A stretch of DNA of 64,000 nucleotides, taken from sequence record PV158447.1. The stretch is one strand, 5' to 3'. Shown in pieces: positions 9,986 to 20,571 of this stretch. The notes under the pieces were generated by a model. It saw only the letters and a list, made by a program, of their open reading frames with translations. It ran no database searches and was not told where the DNA came from. The translations under genes and the position numbers were made by a program. Within the stretch, counting starts at the first letter, position 1. Each line of letters opens with the position of its first letter.

Positions 9986-10486
9986 ATGATAATGAATATT
10001 CGTGAAAAAGTTCAAGCATTTGTAGACGTCATGGTTCAGGTTCATCCTGACCAGTTCTTCGTTTCTGAGATGTTGGTTTACGTTGACGATTATTGTCGTT
10101 CCCTGGAAACCCACGTCTCCAAGTTGATTGGTGTTGAGCTACTCGCTCATCACCGTGAGTTACGTCGTAACGATCCGGCCAATCGTCGAGTCTGGTCCCT
10201 TACCAAGAGGGATTTCAATCGAGTAGTGGAAACCTTCCACAACCAATATCTGTTGGATACAAATTACAGTATCCATGATCTTGGCCGGATACTGGGCCCG
10301 GTAATTTCAAGTTTGATTTCTCGTCACCGGATTTATTACCTCTTCTCACGGAACAGGAGTTTGCGTGGACAGAATAAAGCACATGGTACGGATATCCAAG
10401 CCGGGAACTATTTATTACGGAAAGTGGTACATCCCGTACCTCGTATCGAGAATGTTTCAATCCAAGGGGAGTCCTTCCCATGTTAA
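9986..10486 (+). CDS. Hypothetical protein (166 aa)
   Basis: TTAGGG SD. Confidence 0.75.
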   Translation: MIMNIREKVQAFVDVMVQVHPDQFFVSEMLVYVDDYCRSLETHVSKLIGVELLAHHRELRRNDPANRRVWSLTKRDFNRVVETFHNQYLLDTNYSIHDLGRILGPVISSLISRHRIYYLFSRNRSLRGQNKAHGTDIQAGNYLLRKVVHPVPRIENVSIQGESFPC

Positions 10487-11208: not shown

Positions 11209-11643
11209 ATGCTGAAGTATTTGTTTGGTGGGATGTTTGACAGTTCTGGCGATTGTTACGATGCGGTTACACTGACTTGGAAGCGTGATAGTTTCCAACA
11301 TCAGGATATGGCTCGGCAAACTCGGATGAACGTTTTGCAAGGCGGGTTCACTGATTTTGATACCATCGATGGGGCGATTACTAATTTCCACGGTGAAAGT
11401 ATTTCCTGTCGGGTAGACAGTACTCACTCCCGCTCCCAAGACACCATCGCAAAGATCATGGCCGAAGGGAAAGGATACAAAATCGAGTTTGAAGATGATT
11501 CGATCCCTGTAGTCCTTTTGTTCGTCGATAAGGACGTGCAAGTAGAAGCTGATATCGGTTGGAAATCAGTAACCCCAATTACTGATCGAAAACAAATCGC
11601 AGATGAAATTGCGGATTGTGTCAATTGGAGAGGACGGTTCTAA
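11209..11643 (+). CDS. Hypothetical protein (144 aa)
   Basis: AAGGAG SD. Confidence 0.8.
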   Translation: MLKYLFGGMFDSSGDCYDAVTLTWKRDSFQHQDMARQTRMNVLQGGFTDFDTIDGAITNFHGESISCRVDSTHSRSQDTIAKIMAEGKGYKIEFEDDSIPVVLLFVDKDVQVEADIGWKSVTPITDRKQIADEIADCVNWRGRF

Positions 11644-11867
11644 TGTTTCCATTTGTAGAAGTAATACTCGCTATGATTGCACTGATATACCTCTTTATTG
11701 GGTGGGGCGTGATTGCGCCCATGGGGTGGTACTTCGGGGAACGGTATAAACGAACATGGTATAAGGATATTGCGTTCATTATCATATTTATAATGGTTGT
11801 CCTCTTTTGGCTTCCCATCGCTCTTATCACGGTGGTATTCGGAGCCTCGTTCAAACGAAAACTATAA
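11643..11867 (+). CDS. Small two-TM membrane protein (74 aa)
   Basis: TAATG overlap; two hydrophobic segments around W-x-FGE-x-x-K. Confidence 0.7.
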   Translation: MFPFVEVILAMIALIYLFIGWGVIAPMGWYFGERYKRTWYKDIAFIIIFIMVVLFWLPIALITVVFGASFKRKL

Positions 11868-11870
11868 ACA

Positions 11871-11898
11871 CTACCGCTACCCAAACGGGCAGCGGTAG
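11871..11898. terminator. Bidirectional terminator hairpin between convergent genes
   Basis: CTACCGCTACCC-AAAC-GGGCAGCGGTAG (one mismatch). Confidence 0.7.
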
Positions 11899-11902
11899 CT
11901 AT

Positions 11903-12526
11903 CTATTTGTTTGTTTTCTTTTTACCAACTACTTCTGGAATATGAGGAACATAAAACAAATTGAACACGTGATCATCAATGCTTTTAGCAGCCACTGTAA
12001 TCGTTCCGGAGAGGCTCGTGGTTGGATCCTTTTCTGTTTCCAGGGAAAGTGTAACAGTATCCCAGAAAACGTCTCCTAGCGCTTCTTGTGCGGCGTCAGC
12101 GGTATTCTTAAGTTCATTAAGAACTACTACGAATTCTTTTTCTTCGGTCAGATAGAAAACACCAAATGTTATTTCCCGTTTACCAATCGCTGCCAACAAA
12201 TCAGTTTTGGTATACTGCGGTGTTGGTATCTCTAGTGATTTGAAAATTGTTTCAACACCAACCTTTTCTATCAATGCATCTGCGTGAAAGAATCCTGTCT
12301 TACGAGAAACAAAAGAACTAACAATTCTCCCGTTAGGGAAAGTGGTTGGGTGCTCTATTTGTACGTCTTTGTTCTTCAGTCCGTAGTACCTGGCTTTTGC
12401 TAAAGCGAGTGTATTCAAATCCCCTTTAGCGGTGAGTTCTTCTATTCGTTTCTGCATGTAGAGTTCAATAGAAGCGAACAAGGGATCTTTGATTTCCTTT
12501 GTCCTGATTAATTCTGCTTTAATCAT
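11903..12526 (-). CDS. Standalone paralog of the N-terminal domain of the 1..2621 tail-fibre-like protein (207 aa)
   Basis: Ungapped hand alignment: 31 of the first 101 residues identical (IKDPLF, GDL, LA-x-x-RY-x-G, IE-x-P), plus LGDV further on. Confidence 0.8.
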   Translation of the reverse strand: MIKAELIRTKEIKDPLFASIELYMQKRIEELTAKGDLNTLALAKARYYGLKNKDVQIEHPTTFPNGRIVSSFVSRKTGFFHADALIEKVGVETIFKSLEIPTPQYTKTDLLAAIGKREITFGVFYLTEEKEFVVVLNELKNTADAAQEALGDVFWDTVTLSLETEKDPTTSLSGTITVAAKSIDDHVFNLFYVPHIPEVVGKKKTNK

Positions 12527-12575
12527 TACTTTCCCCGTAATTAGTTATAGGACGTTATCAAACGATCCTTTTTTT

Positions 12576-12615
12576 AAGTTCCATTTATTTTGAGGTAGAT
12601 ATTATCTACATGTAG
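12576..12615 (+). promoter_or_regulatory. Phage early-type promoter, copy 2
   Basis: AAGTTCCATTTATTTTGAGGTAGATATTATCTACATGTAG. Confidence 0.75.
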
Positions 12616-12659
12616 CACACAGTGCGTTTATTTAAACTTTACTTAGGAGTTTATTTGTT

Positions 12660-13055
12660 ATGGTAGTTCTCGATATCCTGGATTTCGACAATTATTTTAC
12701 TGGGTCGTTAGAATCCAATATCGAATACTTTCACGGTTCTAAAGAAGCAATGTGGACCAGTTCCCACTACAGAACGATCGAGTATCACTACCTCTATGGA
12801 ACTCGTCTGAGAGAACATGTTGAACAAAACTTCTTAAAGGAACTTTCTTTTAATCCCGTTAAGTGGTTGTTGTTCATTAGTTTTCTCAGTACGATGCGAG
12901 TGTTTGACAAAATTGCAACAAACCATTTGGCGTTCGCTACAGAACGTGGAACAGAAGTGATCCGCTTGGCGTTGGTAAGGATTCAAAATCAATACCGATC
13001 TTTAATTAGACGTTACGGTGATATAGACAACATCCACGTTACAAGAAGAGGTTAG
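12660..13055 (+). CDS. Hypothetical protein (131 aa)
   Basis: TTAGGAG SD after promoter. Confidence 0.75.
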   Translation: MVVLDILDFDNYFTGSLESNIEYFHGSKEAMWTSSHYRTIEYHYLYGTRLREHVEQNFLKELSFNPVKWLLFISFLSTMRVFDKIATNHLAFATERGTEVIRLALVRIQNQYRSLIRRYGDIDNIHVTRRG

Positions 13056-13057
13056 TT

Positions 13058-13564
13058 ATGATCCAACGACAGTTTTGTTGGAGTGATCTTCATATCGATC
13101 ATTATCCAGCTCTGAAACATCGAGGGTGGTTTGAAACCCTAGAAGAATACCAGGAGGATTGTGCCGAGAAATGGGATCGAATTGTAGCTCCTCAAGACAC
13201 GATCTATCTGGTTGGTGATATCGCCATGACCTGGGATGGGTTACGTTGGGTAAGTAAACGGCCCGGTCGGAAAATTCTGATCCTGGGAAATAACGATAAA
13301 GAACGCGAGAACAGTATTCGGGATTTACTTTCTGTTTATGATGATGTTGAAGGTTTGATGAAACATCGGAAAGGTTTCTATTTCTCCCATGCGCCGGTGC
13401 ATGTATCGGAATTGAGGGGGAGAAGAAACATTCACGGGCATACTCACGGGAAGGTCATTACTGATCCACGCTACATTAATGTCTGTATTGACATTGCAAG
13501 GGACGGGCCTGTGGATTTACAGGATATCGTTTCTAAACGTTATGCGTCATTTAGGAGTGAATAG
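13058..13564 (+). CDS. Calcineurin-like metallophosphoesterase
   Basis: SDLHIDH, LVGDIA, LGNND, FSHAP, IHGHTH motifs. Confidence 0.9.
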   Translation: MIQRQFCWSDLHIDHYPALKHRGWFETLEEYQEDCAEKWDRIVAPQDTIYLVGDIAMTWDGLRWVSKRPGRKILILGNNDKERENSIRDLLSVYDDVEGLMKHRKGFYFSHAPVHVSELRGRRNIHGHTHGKVITDPRYINVCIDIARDGPVDLQDIVSKRYASFRSE

Positions 13565-13752
13565 TGAAGAGGCTTCAACTCAGTTATAAACAAAGTTTTG
13601 AACAGATGTATCTGCAATTGAAACACCACCGTAAAGGACGAGACGTAAACATTGTTCCAAAAGTGGAACGTTGTATCTGCCCTCGTTTGAACGGTACGTT
13701 TGCCTACGTTTACAAACACGATCTTTACGATCCAGTTTTACAAATGCAATAA
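13564..13752 (+). CDS. Hypothetical protein (62 aa, GTG start)
   Basis: Overlaps upstream stop; GGAG SD. Confidence 0.55.
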   Translation: MKRLQLSYKQSFEQMYLQLKHHRKGRDVNIVPKVERCICPRLNGTFAYVYKHDLYDPVLQMQ

Positions 13753-13763
13753 GGAGAAAAATA

Positions 13764-14468
13764 ATGACTATGGTCGTTTTTGACGGAACGTGTTTGGTAG
13801 CTGATGGTGCGTCAACTGTTCGCGATACACACATGAAATCGCTGTTTGATGAATATCATAAAACAAAGATCATTGTTCCCAACTTCGAGTTCAAAGATAA
13901 GGCAACGGGCCTTGCCATCAAAGCACTGGCAGGTACTGGGGTAGTGGCTGATATTAACGATGTCATAGAACAGATCTTGATAATCGGACGAGCTGGCCAC
14001 GACATAGACCTTCATCTGGTTCAGCTTCAGCACCTACTAAAAGACAGGACGGAGTGTCAGATAGTCGCCATCTGCACGTCTGAAACAGACGACGGCACTA
14101 ACGTAATCGCCACTGATCTCTTTAGGACGGGGGTTTATAGAGACGAGTGTTTCGATTGGTCTAAACAAGATGCACTCACCCCATCAATAGCTGGAGTAAA
14201 TGATGACATCCCTGACTGGAAATTGGGAGAGGGCTGGGACAGCGCCTTGGAGATTGTTTCATTTGGCTCTGCGCTCTTCCCTGGTAAAGTCGGGGGTCTT
14301 CTAACCAGGTATAACGTATTTACCGGTGTTCTGGATCATCCCAAACATGCCGATAAAGAAATCTTGCAAGGAATGTATAATAAATTCAGGAAGGAAGAAA
14401 TCGCAAAAGTACAAAAACGATTTTCGAATGTAAAGAATTTCATCAATAACCCCACTAACACTTACTAA
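13764..14468 (+). CDS. Ntn-hydrolase/proteasome-beta (HslV-like) fold protein (234 aa)
   Basis: AAGGAG SD gives start M-TMVVFDGTCLVADG; later KTKII and ALAGTGVVAD, resembling HslV T1...AGD...K33...FAGGTAD. Confidence 0.6.
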   Translation: MTMVVFDGTCLVADGASTVRDTHMKSLFDEYHKTKIIVPNFEFKDKATGLAIKALAGTGVVADINDVIEQILIIGRAGHDIDLHLVQLQHLLKDRTECQIVAICTSETDDGTNVIATDLFRTGVYRDECFDWSKQDALTPSIAGVNDDIPDWKLGEGWDSALEIVSFGSALFPGKVGGLLTRYNVFTGVLDHPKHADKEILQGMYNKFRKEEIAKVQKRFSNVKNFINNPTNTY

Positions 14469-14476
14469 GGTACAAC

Positions 14477-14851
14477 ATGTCTATTCTGAAAGAAATTCAC
14501 AATAAAGGTTTGAAAGGACTCCATGTTAATGATGATCTCAAATGGGCTTTCTGGGGTCTGTTGTTCGATCGTCAAACTGGTTCTGTGAGGAAACGGATCA
14601 TCCGGACCGTCGCTATGCGGGTTGGGGATAATCCGACCGGACACGACTTTAATAAGGAACAGGTTTCAGAAATCATCAAAGACATGATCAAACGTTCCAA
14701 CTCACTTCCGGAATTGGTTCATTCGGATGCCGTTCGGGCTGCGACACGTATCTGTCTGGAACGCACCCTCCATCTAGACCACCCTGAAGAGATCTTTGAT
14801 AAAATCGTTGAACACTTCTCTAACTTACCCAAGGAGCAAGATGATGACTGA
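14477..14851 (+). CDS. Hypothetical protein (124 aa)
   Basis: TAAGG SD. Confidence 0.8.
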   Translation: MSILKEIHNKGLKGLHVNDDLKWAFWGLLFDRQTGSVRKRIIRTVAMRVGDNPTGHDFNKEQVSEIIKDMIKRSNSLPELVHSDAVRAATRICLERTLHLDHPEEIFDKIVEHFSNLPKEQDDD

Positions 14852-15383
14852 ACAAGACCAAGAAATGGAATCGATTCGTAGTCGAGTCCTTCGACTCCTC
14901 TGTCAATATGATCGCCCAATGCAAGAGTCCAATGCACGTTGCGACAACGTCACTATGTTCTTTAGCACCGGGATCTACCACAACCTGGAACATCGCACCA
15001 AACGTCTCCTGGACTTCCTTAACGTCATTGCTATGCTGAGTGAAGATATCAGGGTAGGCGATATCGAGAATCTCCCTGAGGGTGGTTTAGAGCGATTTGA
15101 AGAGACGATCAATCTCCACCGTGAACACATCCTCCGGGTTATTGATTGGGATAATGATCTCTTTGACGCTTGGTTGGGTTTCAATGGAGTTATCGAATGG
15201 GGTGAGGACGGCTTTATTATCACCATTCGGAATGAAGAAGAATGGAAAGATGCTCACCAAGGTGTGTTAGACTACCTCTTCGGGGATGAGGAAGGGGTCC
15301 AAAGACGTTTTATCAATCCCAAGCAACCCTTTGCCAGTAAGGAACTGGTAAGAGAGTTTATGGAAGTGTTTGATATTAAATAA
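14841..15383 (+). CDS. Hypothetical acidic protein (180 aa)
   Basis: AAGGAG SD before ATG at 14841. Confidence 0.8.
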   Translation: MMTEQDQEMESIRSRVLRLLCQYDRPMQESNARCDNVTMFFSTGIYHNLEHRTKRLLDFLNVIAMLSEDIRVGDIENLPEGGLERFEETINLHREHILRVIDWDNDLFDAWLGFNGVIEWGEDGFIITIRNEEEWKDAHQGVLDYLFGDEEGVQRRFINPKQPFASKELVREFMEVFDIK

Positions 15384-15397
15384 CTTAGGAGAAAGAA

Positions 15398-15793
15398 ATG
15401 TTCGTATTACCGACAACTCGTGGAACACATCGTCATGTTTTTATCTCTAACAAGTTTGTAGTGAAGATCCCCCGTATCAGTGCGTGGTGGAAATTCTCTC
15501 CTGATGTTGAACGGTTCAAAGAGAACTTGTATCTCAACAAAATGGAGATTGAGCTCTGCAAGAAACATGCTGGTGAAAAAGGAATTCCCAAACTTTACTT
15601 TGGTGGGTTCTTTGGCTTGTTGGTGATCATGAAACGGTACCAACAGTTTGAAGATCGCGAGGAATACATGGACAAACTCTCTGTACTCATTGAGAAAAGC
15701 CCACTTCCCCGTGAGTTTTGGGAAGATGATGCGCACATGAATAATTTCGGTTTCGATTACGACGGTTCCATTGTTAAAATTGATTTGGGGTAA
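15398..15793 (+). CDS. Minimal protein-kinase-like protein 1 (131 aa)
   Basis: RGTHRHVF, VVKIP, NKME, IPKLY, LLVIMKR, DDAHMNNFG, KIDLG in kinase subdomain order. Confidence 0.7.
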   Translation: MFVLPTTRGTHRHVFISNKFVVKIPRISAWWKFSPDVERFKENLYLNKMEIELCKKHAGEKGIPKLYFGGFFGLLVIMKRYQQFEDREEYMDKLSVLIEKSPLPREFWEDDAHMNNFGFDYDGSIVKIDLG

Positions 15794-15797
15794 AAAA

Positions 15798-16286
15798 ATG
15801 TCTATTAAAGCACGACCGCAATTTAAAGACTGTAATCGACTGGAGAAATCTTTCCGTGAAGTTTTGAAAGACAAACCTTGTGGAATTAACCCTGCTGAAT
15901 ATGTCAAAATTCTGAAGGATATCACTCACCAGAGTTTCAACGACAGTAACATCTTCATGTTGCAAATGTTTGATTGTAACGGTTCTGTGAAAATCCATGG
16001 AGATACTTTCCGTAACGTTTATACCGAGGAGGAGTGGTACGAACGTTTTGGTTATCGGAAATCTTTATATCGCTCATGCCTCACTGGCATGACGATTCCT
16101 ATCAACATCAAATACAATCGCGCCTTTTCCAAAGCTCGGTTAGTCATCGCAGTTTGTGATCACACTTGGCACTATCAGATCTCTGTGCAATTACTAAACA
16201 GCAACACCGATGCCTGGTCAGATAACATTGTGTCCACCAACAGTGTCAGAGAAGTTATCGAATACCTCACCCAAGAAACCATGTGA
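15798..16286 (+). CDS. Hypothetical protein (162 aa)
   Basis: ATG 4 nt after upstream stop. Confidence 0.75.
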   Translation: MSIKARPQFKDCNRLEKSFREVLKDKPCGINPAEYVKILKDITHQSFNDSNIFMLQMFDCNGSVKIHGDTFRNVYTEEEWYERFGYRKSLYRSCLTGMTIPINIKYNRAFSKARLVIAVCDHTWHYQISVQLLNSNTDAWSDNIVSTNSVREVIEYLTQETM

Positions 16287-16302
16287 CTTAGGAGTAATAA
16301 GT

Positions 16303-17016
16303 ATGACTGATCTCAACCCCACTACTCTTCATCGTGAGTGGTCACTACTGAATCGTCAAAAAGTGAAATTTTGGCGGAAGGGTAAAAATGAATTCTTCCT
16401 TTCTCTTGTTCATCCAAATCAGATTTTTGGTAAGGATGTGGAACTTTGCGAAATGGGGGACGTGATTTATATCAATCAATTCCGTCCCGTGGGAATACAT
16501 GACGGAGAGAAACTAGTAGCATTTACCCTGAACTTTGATCCAGATGGAATACCAACTGCTTACCGGTCACTTCCCTTCCAGTTCATCGAGACCATGGATG
16601 TACGAGAAGCGAGTTATTATATCGCTACCGCATTTGCCATGAACAACCTGGAAGATAAACTGGTCGACCAGATCGAACACCCCCTGGCTACGATTCTGCT
16701 CAAACATATTTACACGATGCAGAACACTACCCTCTCATCAGTGTTACTGGAAAAGAAAAGCAGAAGTGGAGAATTCTGGGACGAGGGAGAACTCAAACGT
16801 TACAGTTTTACCTATCTCGGAATCCCCGGTGGACTTATTGTGGAGGGATCTATGGGAGAAATTAAAATAGCTCTTCGTGCCACTATTGATCCTACCGACG
16901 AGTCTCTGGATATTGCACTCGCTCATAACGGAGAACTTCCCTCGAAATTCTCATTCGGAAATGAGAAAACAACCTGGGAAAGGGCTGTCGCTGAGTTTTG
17001 TCAACACCACATTTAA
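16303..17016 (+). CDS. Hypothetical protein (237 aa)
   Basis: TTAGGAG SD before ATG at 16303. Confidence 0.8.
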   Translation: MTDLNPTTLHREWSLLNRQKVKFWRKGKNEFFLSLVHPNQIFGKDVELCEMGDVIYINQFRPVGIHDGEKLVAFTLNFDPDGIPTAYRSLPFQFIETMDVREASYYIATAFAMNNLEDKLVDQIEHPLATILLKHIYTMQNTTLSSVLLEKKSRSGEFWDEGELKRYSFTYLGIPGGLIVEGSMGEIKIALRATIDPTDESLDIALAHNGELPSKFSFGNEKTTWERAVAEFCQHHI

Positions 17017-17032
17017 TTTAGGGGAAATACAA

Positions 17033-17228
17033 ATGAAAAACCAACGTCTGGGTATGAAAGATCTTTTTCGGGGGCGCTCGTCATCTGGCAGAACCTGGTA
17101 TCGAACCAGTTAAAGTTCTTGTGCTTCGTAAAAACAATGCTGTTGTCCGTGGATCCTTTATTAGTATTGCCTCAAAACCAATGAGCGCAATAGAAGCCCT
17201 GCGCTCTGTCAATGGTAATGGAAAATAG
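17033..17228 (+). pseudogene. Frameshifted small gene (64 aa if the G5 run at 17070-17074 were G4)
   Basis: Strong SD and ATG give only 26 aa; the +1 frame continues GARHLAEPGIEPVKVLVLRKNN... with phage-like codons and has no start codon of its own. Confidence 0.55.
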
Positions 17229-17239
17229 CATCTGTCGAA

Positions 17240-17497
17240 ATGATAGCAAAATTCCCGCCTACCCGTGAGGTTGAGCCTGGGTGTCAGTACGTAATCAAAG
17301 ATTTTGTCAGCCCGGTACAGTTTGTCCACATCATGGACGAGAATGGGGATGTTCACTTTTTACAGGACGTGTATTTGGACCCAGCAGAATCCAGGTTACG
17401 TGTTTTTGCTAAAGAAAAACAGGCCAAACGGTATAGTACATTTCCTGAAACTTTTGGAGTTGGATTGGAAACTATTTTTGGGGAGTCTGGGAAATGA
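17240..17497 (+). CDS. Hypothetical protein (85 aa)
   Basis: ORF fills operon gap. Confidence 0.65.
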   Translation: MIAKFPPTREVEPGCQYVIKDFVSPVQFVHIMDENGDVHFLQDVYLDPAESRLRVFAKEKQAKRYSTFPETFGVGLETIFGESGK

Positions 17498-18255
17498 AAA
17501 ACGCATTTGATGCAGTGAGGGAATTCGAAGAACAGATCGATACTTTTTGTTCTTTTGGATTTGAGAGTTATCATGAAACTGTGAAGAGTGTTTGTTTGGA
17601 CGCTCTTTCGTTTCTTGGCGAGCTTGAAAGGAAGGATCTGGTATTCTCATCAGGGACAGTTACTCCGTTGGCCGAAAGTTTGCGCTCAATCACATCTCCA
17701 TTGATCCCTGGGGGTTTTAAACCCTGGGTTTTTATATTCCTTGGTGACCGTAAAGAAACAGGCAAGTTCTTTAAGGAACATCCGGAGTTCAAAGAGAGAT
17801 TTGAATCCACTTGTCAGGCTATAGAACTGTTGGCTAAAGACATCCCGATAGAACACTGGAACTGGTTCAACCAGCAACAACGAATCAAGAACAGCCCCTA
17901 TCCATCTGAACCGAGGGTAGTGAGGACTGTCCAGGACTTGCTGGTTGTCTTGGTAGACGTCCCTCACAAAGATACTCCGATCGACTCCCTTCGGATACCT
18001 CGTCGGGACGAAGGGATGTTTGATATTGATCTTTTCTCCGGTGAATTCCGTGGGGAAATCATTACCAGACAACGGTTCAATCCTAAAACAATTCTGGATG
18101 CCACGATAATCTCTAGTTCGCTCACGGTTCAGGGTTTGATCGACATATTGAAACTGGCTCATCCAGATGCCTTTATTAACGATATTCGTTTGAAAGGTGC
18201 CGATAACGCCATTTACTTCGCGTACGAAGAAGACGGTGTAGTGATGCACGATTAA
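17494..18255 (+). CDS. Hypothetical protein (253 aa)
   Basis: ATGA overlap, GGGGAG SD. Confidence 0.8.
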   Translation: MKNAFDAVREFEEQIDTFCSFGFESYHETVKSVCLDALSFLGELERKDLVFSSGTVTPLAESLRSITSPLIPGGFKPWVFIFLGDRKETGKFFKEHPEFKERFESTCQAIELLAKDIPIEHWNWFNQQQRIKNSPYPSEPRVVRTVQDLLVVLVDVPHKDTPIDSLRIPRRDEGMFDIDLFSGEFRGEIITRQRFNPKTILDATIISSSLTVQGLIDILKLAHPDAFINDIRLKGADNAIYFAYEEDGVVMHD

Positions 18256-18264
18256 CGTTCGGTA

Positions 18265-18295
18265 ATCCTCCTGACCCACAGTGGGTCAGGAGGAT
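18265..18295. terminator. Intrinsic terminator hairpin
   Basis: ATCCTCCTGACCC-ACAGT-GGGTCAGGAGGAT. Confidence 0.75.
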
Positions 18296-18425
18296 ATTGA
18301 ATTCTGTTATTTATTTTATTACTTACGGGACGGGTAACGCTTCGATCTCAAATGTATGAGCACCCAGGGTGTAAAGACTACCTATTTCCTTATGTTATTT
18401 GGGGTGAGTCCCCAAAGCATTTCTT

Positions 18426-18466
18426 CAGTTCCATTTATTTTGAGATAGATATTATTAATATGTATA
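18426..18466 (+). promoter_or_regulatory. Phage early-type promoter, copy 3
   Basis: CAGTTCCATTTATTTTGAGATAGATATTATTAATATGTATA. Confidence 0.75.
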
Positions 18467-18500
18467 GATTTCAAGATACATTTAATTTAGGAGTAACGAA

Positions 18501-18953
18501 ATGAATTTGATTACCAAGTTAACTTGTTGGGTATTTAGTAAATTTGGACCAGAAGAACGTGCAGAAGGGAGAGATCGTCAGGTCTTTATCTTTAAAAATA
18601 AAGTCATCAAAGTGCCACAAATGACTGACTGGTTATCGTTTATCAGGGGATATTACTCTAACCTAAAAGAACTCGATAGTATCCAAGATTATACCGGAAA
18701 CTTTAAAGAACATCTTCCCGTAATCTTGGGGAGTTATTGTTTTGGATTAATTGTTGTTTATGTCCGCTATAAAGAAGTTGGTTTGGTGAATTCAGAAGAC
18801 GAAACTATTCGTTATAAGGATCGGTTGATGCTCATACGTAATGAAGAGCATCCAGGGCATTCATACATCTGGTTTAACGATCCAAAGATTTTTAACTACG
18901 GTTGGGATAAGTTTGGTAGATTGGTAATTATTGACATCGGAACGCCTTACTAA
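18501..18953 (+). CDS. Minimal protein-kinase-like protein 2 (150 aa)
   Basis: EGRDRQVF, VIKVP, NLKE, LPVIL, GLIVVYVRY, NDPKIFNYG, IIDIG; paralog of 15398..15793. Confidence 0.65.
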   Translation: MNLITKLTCWVFSKFGPEERAEGRDRQVFIFKNKVIKVPQMTDWLSFIRGYYSNLKELDSIQDYTGNFKEHLPVILGSYCFGLIVVYVRYKEVGLVNSEDETIRYKDRLMLIRNEEHPGHSYIWFNDPKIFNYGWDKFGRLVIIDIGTPY

Positions 18954-18965
18954 TGGGGGAAAGAA

Positions 18966-20000
18966 ATGAAGAAAGAAATTACTTGCGTAAATGAATTCGA
19001 GAAATGGTATCTGGAACTTCTCACCACGGTTATGAATCTTGGTACGGTGAAATCTGACCGCACCGGTACCGGTACCCGTTCTCTGAGTTTTGCCAATTAC
19101 GTCCACGATCTACGTTCTGGACTTCCACACATTCGGAGTCGCTACCTCCGGCCTGATCGTCCTGGACGTGAGATGATCTGGATGTTGTCCGGTTCCAGCA
19201 ACGTGAAAGATCTTCAGGCTCTGGATGTTCCCTTCTGGAATGAGTTTGCGGATGAGACTGGTGAACTAGGTCCGGTATATGGTTACCTGTGGCGCCACTG
19301 GCCGAATGGGGACGGTACCGAGACCGATCAGATCAAGTACATCGAAGACCTGCTCAAGAATAATCCGGATTCTCGTCGGATGGTGGTTAACTGTTGGCAT
19401 CCTTCTTACATTCCGGAAAGTAGCACTTCCCCTAAGGAGAACTACAAGTTTGGGAAGCAAGCACTCACTCCTTGTCATTTCAACTGGGGAGTGGTTACTG
19501 AAGAACTTTCTTGGGCTGATCGGATGGCGTGGCTGAAAGAAAATATGCCGAGTCGTAACGCATCTCTTTACCCCGTTCATGGTGCCGGATGGGTAGAAGA
19601 AACTGTCGAGAAACTCGACCAGTGGGGTGTTCCCAAACGCTACCTGGATCTGTCGTTCAGTATGCGGAGTAATGACACTGTTCTAGGTCTTCCTGCCAAC
19701 TTCAACATGTACGCTCACCTGGCAGAGATGCTGGCTAAAACCAATAACATGATTCCTCGCTATTTGAGTTTCAATGGTGTTGGTGACGTCCACATGTACC
19801 TCGATCACATCAGGGGCGTGAAAGAGCAGTTGGCTTGGGTGAGGGATAATGAAGAGGCCGTTTACTCTCAAGTAACCAAGTTGAAGATCTTGAATGTTCG
19901 GGAATCGATCACGGAATACGTTCCGAGTGATTTTGAATACGAGAACTACAACAAGGAAGATGTGGGTCCTGCCATCAAGTTCCCGATTGCTGTCGGGTAG
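18966..20000 (+). CDS. thyA: Thymidylate synthase
   Basis: DRTGTGT, EMIWMLSG, LGPVYG, SRRMVV, PCH catalytic Cys, RSND..LGLPAN, GDVHMYLDH. Confidence 0.97.
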   Translation: MKKEITCVNEFEKWYLELLTTVMNLGTVKSDRTGTGTRSLSFANYVHDLRSGLPHIRSRYLRPDRPGREMIWMLSGSSNVKDLQALDVPFWNEFADETGELGPVYGYLWRHWPNGDGTETDQIKYIEDLLKNNPDSRRMVVNCWHPSYIPESSTSPKENYKFGKQALTPCHFNWGVVTEELSWADRMAWLKENMPSRNASLYPVHGAGWVEETVEKLDQWGVPKRYLDLSFSMRSNDTVLGLPANFNMYAHLAEMLAKTNNMIPRYLSFNGVGDVHMYLDHIRGVKEQLAWVRDNEEAVYSQVTKLKILNVRESITEYVPSDFEYENYNKEDVGPAIKFPIAVG

Positions 20001-20011
20001 ATCTAATGGAG

Positions 20012-20032
20012 TGTGGGGAGTAATTCCCCACA
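20012..20032 (+). terminator. Probable terminator hairpin after thyA
   Basis: TGTGGGGA-GTAAT-TCCCCACA followed by TTCTTCTTT. Confidence 0.55.
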
Positions 20033-20056
20033 TTCTTCTTTCGATAAGGATGAAAA

Positions 20057-20416
20057 ATGATTTTTGGGATAGAAACAATATTTGAACTGAACGTACTTTC
20101 ATTTCTGATTGTCATTACGTTCAGTTTGCTGGGTCACGGCGTGGGGGAATTGTTTTCTCTGAGACTGTTCCGTAAGGTGCGTCATAATGACCCTAAAACA
20201 ATGCTGAGAGCAAAGCACTTCATCACTGATGGATTTGGTGCCATCTTCTTAGCGTTTGCTTGTATGATCGTTCTGACGTCCGTGGGGAAAGAGCTGTCTG
20301 AATGGTTATTCATGGTTTATGTCGGAACCGCTACTGTTGGGTTCTTCCGATTCCTTTGGTGTAAGTATTGTGCGTTGAGTATTCGTGGTATTCCGGGTTG
20401 GATAGTCAAGGAGTAG
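20057..20416 (+). CDS. Membrane protein (119 aa, about 3 TM)
   Basis: AAGGA SD; hydrophobic segments. Confidence 0.75.
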   Translation: MIFGIETIFELNVLSFLIVITFSLLGHGVGELFSLRLFRKVRHNDPKTMLRAKHFITDGFGAIFLAFACMIVLTSVGKELSEWLFMVYVGTATVGFFRFLWCKYCALSIRGIPGWIVKE

Positions 20417-20418
20417 AG

Positions 20419-20571
20419 GTGGATAAAGTCGTAATTGGGATTCTCTTGATTGTATTGTTCTATTTACTTATCGTTTTGCATGGTGTCATCCAACGTCGTC
20501 GTTATTCCAAAAACAGTGTGAAGGATCAACGTAAAGTTTACAGTAGCCAACCAAGACGACCGAGAGGTTAG
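20419..20571 (+). CDS. Small single-TM protein (50 aa, GTG start)
   Basis: AAGGAG SD; hydrophobic N-terminus and basic tail. Confidence 0.6.
   Translation: MDKVVIGILLIVLFYLLIVLHGVIQRRRYSKNSVKDQRKVYSSQPRRPRG

Follow-up and report, generated by a model that had tools for sequence, protein, structure and literature searches.

[quoted passage not shown] OspG and NleH have been described as active kinases with a minimal fold from which subdomains VIII-XI and the activation loop are absent, and OspG becomes fully active only when a partner is bound (PMC12756638). In phage T7, the early gp0.7 kinase (T7K) is a hyper-promiscuous enzyme that serves host takeover and anti-defense; it has a full kinase domain, a shut-off domain and a D-P-V motif, and distant homologs have been mentioned in jumbo phages, including "phage G17" (PMC13645617).

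Here we compare with these systems a family of phage proteins represented by ORF24 of the Aeromonas jumbo phage AhC3_1, a 232,884-bp phage of Aeromonas hydrophila (PV158447.1); the window analyzed is the first 64 kb of its genome. An earlier note on this DNA had proposed that ORF24 is an ultra-minimal kinase whose stop codon directly follows its DFG-like motif. Our analysis places ORF24 in a family present in at least 103 phage records, with members of about 120-150 aa and no Pfam family. By its structural models, the family has a protein-kinase-like fold with a full set of catalytic residues, and it is the smallest kinase-like module found in this analysis, with putative activity. Such kinases are not mentioned in a comparative survey of jumbo phages (PMC7824862), and we found no published description of the ORF24 family in the literature. 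Since three GenBank records already name family members Ser/Thr kinase and predicted structures of members are present in BFVD, the kinase likeness of the family has not gone wholly unseen before.

ORF24 and its surroundings

GenBank carries a CDS at 15398..15793 (+) for ORF24 (XTK85622.1), annotated as "hypothetical protein". The gene and its one paralog in the window are located as follows.

15387..15391, + strand: ribosome-binding site AGGAG, 6 nt upstream of the ORF24 ATG, read in the sequence
15398..15793, + strand: ORF24, 131 aa with an ATG start, predicted mini protein-kinase-like protein, member of PHROG 4301
18501..18953, + strand: ORF29, 150-aa paralog, 27% identical to ORF24, ortholog of D6_0189 of phage D6

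ORF24 is one of a series of co-directional, tightly packed small genes, ORF18-ORF26. Promoter-like sites around it were no more numerous in a consensus scan than expected by chance. Terminator-like hairpins are enriched in the interval 11500..20500 (20 observed, 8.1 +/- 2.7 expected), the strongest being at 11870..11899 (-), after ORF17. An unannotated antisense ORF of 172 aa at 15407..15925 (-) exceeds ORF24 in length; it was rejected as a gene and taken as a mechanical artefact, as all homology and fold results favor the + strand frame. Elsewhere in the window, GenBank lists 10000..10486 (-) not as a CDS but as a misc_feature with the text "similar to hypothetical protein; ORF12", and this may be a disrupted gene. 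ORF21, at 13764..14468 (+), has a weak match to the HslV-family peptidases (phrog_1040, E=0.024), and its ortholog in phage AerS_266 (45% identical) sits just downstream of the kinase pair of that phage. A linkage of the family to tRNA genes was also considered and set aside: some homologs lie close to tRNA clusters, yet the window contains no tRNA genes.

Predicted fold and conserved residues

The AlphaFold2 model of ORF24, built from the larger (A2, n=34 sequences) of two family alignments (A1, n=29), has a pLDDT of 92.2 and a pTM of 0.83. In order, its elements are three strands, one long helix, two further strands, two helices of which the second is short, and a final two strands, and they can be divided into an N-lobe equivalent and a rudimentary C-lobe.

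15413..15637, + strand: N-lobe equivalent, residues 6-80, from model secondary structure and column conservation
15422..15433, + strand: G9/R12, in the N-lobe equivalent
15464..15466, + strand: K23, in the third strand of the model
15545..15547, + strand: E50, in the long helix of the model
15638..15790, + strand: rudimentary C-lobe, residues 81-131, from model and alignment
15728..15745, + strand: predicted catalytic loop D111..N116, in the loop preceding strand 117-119 of the model
15782..15784, + strand: predicted Mg-binding D129, just past the last strand of the model

In the model, the N-lobe consists of strands 7-8, 12-16 and 20-25, helix 37-56 and strands 66-69 and 76-79, with G73 and R80 also falling within it, and the C-lobe is reduced to helix 87-100, short helix 105-109 and strands 117-119 and 125-127. 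There is no strand 9, no activation segment and no helix F. The positions taken by K23, E50, D111, N116 and D129 in this model correspond to a kinase arrangement.

The earlier note had called for a Foldseek comparison against the PKL superfamily, and Foldseek run against the PDB gave only kinase-superfamily structures among the 50 matches listed for each paralog. With the ORF24 model as query against the PDB, all 50 listed matches belong to the kinase superfamily (prob 0.91-1.00). The best of these is WbdD (E about 5e-4, TMq 0.60-0.64), and the others include phosphorylase kinase (PhK), PRPK, APH(2''), Rio2, CK2, BRAF, POMK, MLKL, AceK and PknB. The ORF29 model (pLDDT 90.3) likewise has kinase-superfamily structures as all 50 of its listed matches (prob 0.91-1.00), led by Rio2 (E 1.2e-4), OspG (3.7e-4) and NleH1/2, with WbdD also present. 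These fold E-values are modest, with four PDB matches at E <= 1e-3 for ORF24 and nine for ORF29. Searched against a viral structure library, the ORF24 model matched members of its own family first, followed by small phage proteins of 117-210 aa, several of them named protein kinase, and by T7-type kinases.

Conservation across the family falls on the same residues. K23 (in V-V-K-I-P), E50 (in N-K-M-E) and D129 (in D-L-G) are present in all 34 sequences of the A2 alignment, G73 is invariant in the family alignments, and D111 and N116 of the catalytic loop (D-A-H-M-N-N in ORF24) are found in 33/34 and 32/34 sequences, respectively. G9, R12 and P25 are each conserved in 33/34. As these conserved columns are the very residues that had been picked from a single sequence, the motif pattern lies far beyond chance; all of the motifs named in the earlier note are present in the claimed order within 131 aa, each on a conserved family column. 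One of them must be read differently. The stretch RGTHRHVF, which had been called a G-loop, does hold the conserved G9 and R12, but a G-x-G-x-x-G loop is absent, and the glycine-rich loop is cut down to a lone conserved Gly and Arg (G-x-x-R). The D+2 position of the catalytic loop is Lys in 21 of the 34 sequences, as in Ser/Thr protein kinases, and directly after the invariant Asp the 34 sequences have Y, L, F, I, H, T or V but in no case Pro.

Searches at the sequence level were less informative. ORF24 has zero Pfam matches at E <= 10, and across the 34 members the best Pfam matches were sub-threshold, to ABC1 (0.11) and PIP49_C (0.016), with none above the gathering threshold. NCBIfam gave no significant match to family members, PADLOC gave no significant match to a named family, and PDB sequence searches with single-sequence and profile queries returned no kinase. 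With all four routes non-significant, fold comparison was the only one to give a named superfamily. The sub-threshold sequence matches are nevertheless enriched in kinases of five families: ABC1, FAM69 (PIP49_C), T7 gp0.7, PD-T4-6 and LanL. The sole solid sequence match was to PHROG 4301 ("unknown function"), with E=1.6e-14 for ORF24 and 1.7e-15 for ORF29. All 29 members tested matched this PHROG (E down to 1.4e-39) over a shared span of about positions 38-167 of the profile, so that PHROG 4301 can be equated with the ORF24 family.

Distribution, paralogs and gene neighborhoods

Twenty relatives of ORF24 were identified when 1.84 billion representatives were searched exhaustively with phmmer, and 19 by a word-indexed profile search. 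In tblastn searches against 50,697 phage records, matches were found in 43, 95 or 103 records depending on the member used as query; a search of IMG/VR for related loci with ORF24 as query found nothing. Family members are scattered over T4-like, N4-like and rV5-like phages and several groups of jumbo phages. We read the family as an accessory gene that has spread horizontally, in a scattered manner, among large virulent phages. The member in Shewanella phage SXP01 (L020:2501-2881) is unannotated and is 53% identical to the Erwinia Y3 protein. Packaging of the family into virions was considered from a "virion structural protein" label in SXP01 and rejected, as the label belongs to an adjacent small CDS and not to the family member.

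A six-frame HMM scan of the window found exactly two copies, ORF24 and ORF29, and tblastn of the AhC3_1 genome with ORF24 as query also gave two places. ORF29 retains the catalytic-loop Lys at D+2, carries an additional helix at its N-terminus (residues 3-15) and ends five residues past the invariant Asp. Phage D6 has counterparts of both genes (ORF24 and D6_0191, 44% identity; ORF29 and D6_0189, 52%), and we count the retention of both paralog lineages in AhC3_1 and D6, along with the presence of the family in at least 103 phage records, as a sign of selection. Phages PS1 and PS2 have three family copies each; in Aeromonas phage PS1 (L003:1082-1896, L021:595-960) two of these are next to each other, with the third about 6 kb off. 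Phages outside Aeromonas have a single copy. Throughout the records examined, each phage with an ORF24-type copy also has an ORF29-type copy, and ORF29-type copies also occur alone.

Three forms of the catalytic loop can be distinguished. The mainstream form, D-x-K-x-x-N, is that of Ser/Thr protein kinases; P0004, for instance, has D-A-K-P-E-N. A clade from T4-like, N4-like and rV5-like phages (L007:1483-1863, L008:1438-1863, L009:1483-1845) has D-[A/G]-F-P-K-N, with a basic residue at D+4 that recalls the tyrosine kinase arrangement. In the six-member clade of ORF24 itself the D+2 Lys is lost and replaced by H, C, S or I, and the chain always ends exactly at D-L-G; one member has Gln in place of N116, and apart from this substitution all catalytic residues, including the putative base D111, are kept.

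The earlier note had raised the possibility that a partner completes the kinase in trans. For a partner encoded by an adjacent gene this found no support: an all-against-all BLAST of flanking genes identified no neighbor conserved across 10 homolog loci, and a Rosetta-stone test with the fused relative P0019 yielded an orphan tail and no candidate partner. A non-adjacent or host partner of ORF24 is possible.

Some neighbors within the window are of interest in their own right. ORF19, at 13058..13564 (+), is a metallophosphoesterase (phrog_547, E=6e-44) that is 65% identical to a "putative Ser/Thr protein phosphatase" of D6. In D6 the phosphoesterase gene immediately precedes the mini-kinase pair, in AhC3_1 it is found 1.8 kb upstream of ORF24, and the block running from metallophosphoesterase to thymidylate synthase is common to the two phages; ORF19 and ORF24 may represent a kinase-phosphatase pairing. 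ORF30, at 18966..20000 (+) and directly downstream of ORF29, is a thymidylate synthase homolog (PF00303, E=2.9e-59) whose length of 344 aa against a 266-position profile indicates sizeable insertions. The adjacency of ORF29 and thymidylate synthase raised the idea of a 5-hmdU DNA kinase, which was set aside, as the phages bearing the family do not track thymidine hypermodification.

The native C-terminus

The TAA stop codon of ORF24 (15791..15793) directly abuts the codons of D129-L130-G131, and the earlier note had asked whether this stop is shared by homologs or marks a truncation of much longer proteins. The short end proved to be the rule in the family. Only 2-5 residues follow the invariant Asp in 25/34 of the A2 members, the longest tail in A2 is 26 residues, and annotated homolog CDSs end 0-3 codons past the aligned end. 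Among the 20 relatives from the exhaustive search, 18 are 120-150 aa in length, the exceptions being P0015 (a 116-aa partial match) and P0019 (313 aa). Homologs with this short end are found in the Aeromonas jumbo phages AerS_266, PS1, D6 and ACP1, and elsewhere in Erwinia Y3 and pEa_SNUABM_5, in 2L372X, and in T4-like PhiZZ30, rV5-like A7_1 and N4-like phi G17, as well as in the 370-kb E. coli phage vB_EcoM_G17, so that 121Q-like phages are also covered. The stop position is therefore common to members from at least five unrelated phage groups. By these alignments, the chain end of ORF24 is a conserved native feature rather than a truncation.

Clearly longer relatives are confined to AH04 (163 aa), RP12 (209 aa), Kc263 (267 aa) and the metagenomic singleton P0019. 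All four follow the family profile through its last position and then continue into tails of their own. These long tails show no relation to each other or to neighbor genes and no similarity detectable by sequence to Pfam and PDB kinase C-lobes, and the P0019 tail has zero homologs in phage records or in a collection of 5.8 billion proteins. The only resemblance, a weak one, is a stretch of about 15-25 residues in P0020, P0028, P0030 and RP12. At the ORF24 stop itself, the TAA runs into seven A's (15791..15800), with the start of ORF25 4 nt further on in the +1 frame. An ORF24/ORF25 fusion by frameshifting at this A-run was considered and rejected: downstream genes and their frames differ between loci, and the slippery-looking junction is not conserved.

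Proposed function and alternatives

Lys, Glu, Asp, Asn and Asp form the set with which the superfamily binds Mg-ATP and transfers phosphate, so their joint conservation points to an ATP-dependent phosphotransferase, and the Ser/Thr-type D-x-K-x-x-N of the family majority makes this probably a protein kinase. We lean toward the view that the ORF24 family is a self-contained, stripped-down PKL module of this kind, with specificity that is low or set by docking. The module would comprise a five-stranded N-lobe with its K23-E50 pair, one C-lobe helix, the catalytic loop D111...N116 and the Mg-binding D129. Mg-ATP would be held in the cleft by K23/E50, N116 and D129, and D111 would act as the base, the gamma-phosphate passing to a hydroxyl group. 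Having no activation segment, the enzyme could not be switched by that route and would be constitutively open, and the missing P+1 and helix G-I surface would mean that a target docks on the exposed catalytic face, or else that specificity is low. The likeliest substrates would be host or phage proteins in early infection, modified for takeover or counter-defense; the scattered distribution of the family among phages is a pattern typical of genes with such roles.

Some observations count against an active kinase, namely the loss of the D+2 Lys in the ORF24 clade, the member with Gln for N116 and the atypical G-x-x-R loop, and likewise the modest fold E-values, the non-significant Pfam, NCBIfam and PDB sequence searches and the failure of the 10 loci to yield a conserved neighbor that would hint at a substrate. 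The question of how stability and catalytic geometry would be maintained without helix F also counts against the proposed activity, which is a prediction from the models. OspG and NleH, which are active without subdomains VIII-XI, set a precedent for an active kinase stripped down in this manner. We suggest only tentatively, and with more doubt than conviction, that the family is competent for phosphotransfer without strand 9, activation segment and helix F and would thus be the smallest self-sufficient kinase unit of the superfamily. In the Aeromonas jumbo phages, the catalytic loop may be braced by assembly of the two or three paralogs, either into a complex of their own or on the target.

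The same ATP core could serve a small-molecule kinase whose substrate is a sugar, a lipid, a nucleotide or a metabolite resembling an antibiotic and which has no need of a peptide-binding C-lobe, an explanation we regard as unlikely. WbdD, which acts on an O-antigen sugar, is the best listed PDB match of ORF24, and the listed matches further include APH(2''), capreomycin phosphotransferase and a protein of the choline/ethanolamine kinase family, but protein kinases and RIO/PRPK score about equal to WbdD. Many small-molecule kinases lack the D+2 Lys, as does the ORF24 clade, whereas the form typical of Ser/Thr protein kinases, D-x-K-x-x-N, prevails in the family. Genes of nucleotide metabolism (thymidylate synthase, RNR, NAD salvage, DNA polymerase) neighbor family members in several phages, but no biosynthetic neighbor is conserved across 10 loci, and the large C-terminal helical subdomains with which such kinases usually hold their substrates (PMC1261164) are missing here.

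It is equally improbable, in our estimate, that the family works in the manner of RIO and Bud32/PRPK, with nucleotide binding or hydrolysis driving or gating contact with a host or phage complex instead of modification of many substrates. It would then be an ATPase, a switch controlled by nucleotide or a pseudokinase-like binder, and ORF24 could be a regulatory partner of its canonical paralog ORF29. RIO kinases and Bud32/PRPK are mainly ATPases or switches in complexes; Rio2 tops the listed ORF29 matches and PRPK is among the best-covered ORF24 matches. This reading would be consistent with the missing substrate-binding lobe, with the lost D+2 Lys of the ORF24 clade and its constant company of ORF29-type copies, and with the dependence of OspG and PRPK on bound partners (PMC12756638; PRPK-TPRKB PDB entries). 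However, the ORF24 clade retains its catalytic residues, including D111 (although RIO kinases keep them too), no partner gene is conserved nearby across 10 loci, and the single copy in phages outside Aeromonas means that a heterodimer cannot be general.

A decaying fragment, or a split gene that obtains its C-lobe from the next ORF by frameshifting or in trans, is very improbable and largely refuted: the seven A's at the stop, the nearby +1-frame start of ORF25 and the few distant longer relatives (AH04, RP12, Kc263, P0019) would suit it, but the stop position is shared across unrelated phage groups, downstream genes are unrelated and their frames differ between loci, the longer tails are mutually unrelated and carry no kinase C-lobe signal, that of P0019 having no homolog in the collections searched, and the ORF24 monomer is modeled confidently alone.

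If the stripped-down PKL module is indeed active, it would redefine minimal kinase catalysis at about 125 residues with no helix F, and would offer a very small, constitutively open scaffold in which to study how a catalytic loop is held in place. It would also constitute a second widespread phage kinase family besides the T7 type, and one whose carriers include phages of E. coli K-12, which are easy to study.

Comparison with known kinases

Measured against the universal PKL core, the ORF24 family has the predicted fold and the residues but stops before strand 9 and has no helix F. Relative to eukaryotic-type protein kinases, ORF24 has nothing beyond subdomain VII: the activation segment with its APE motif, the helix F Asp and helices G-I are all absent.

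OspG, NleH1 and NleH2 (4q5e, 4bvu, 4lrj, 4o96) are among the best-covered matches of the ORF29 model, with E 3.7e-4 to 5e-3 and TMt 0.41-0.47. The matched chains of 168-171 residues (OspG) and 160-163 residues (NleH1/2) are about 30-40 residues longer than members of the ORF24 family, and they have no sequence match to the family in the PDB and are not among the 50 listed fold matches of ORF24. OspG and NleH are secreted bacterial effectors that function in eukaryotic cells, whereas the ORF24 family consists of phage proteins.

The RIO kinases (Rio2, RioK1) and Bud32/PRPK are atypical small kinases and rank among the top fold matches of ORF24 and ORF29; RIO kinases, too, have been described as having no activation loop. 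They are universal cellular proteins of 220-325 residues with C-lobe helices and extra N-terminal domains, for which the 131 aa of ORF24 leave no room, and no family member matched the RIO or Bud32 models of Pfam, or the RIO models of NCBIfam, at E <= 1. WbdD (4azs, 4azt, 4ax8) is a bifunctional kinase-methyltransferase of 413-450 residues, of which 137-142 columns align with ORF24 at 18-20% identity.

Among phage kinases, the T7K profile (phrog_15752) gave weak matches, with E 0.049 for ORF24, confined to residues 53-95, and 0.0056 for the best-scoring of the 29 members. T7-like kinases are found among the viral fold matches, but they belong to a separate PHROG and have D-P-V where the ORF24 family has D-[Y/L/F]-G. 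As Pro never follows this Asp in the 34 aligned members of the ORF24 family, the T7K homologs mentioned for jumbo phages, including "phage G17", are, by motif alone, probably different proteins. PHROG 4301, to which the ORF24 family corresponds, carries no functional label; the predicted kinase fold, the catalytic residues and the conserved terminus are added here, and confirmation of the activity would give a function to this PHROG and to more than 100 entries now listed as "hypothetical protein".
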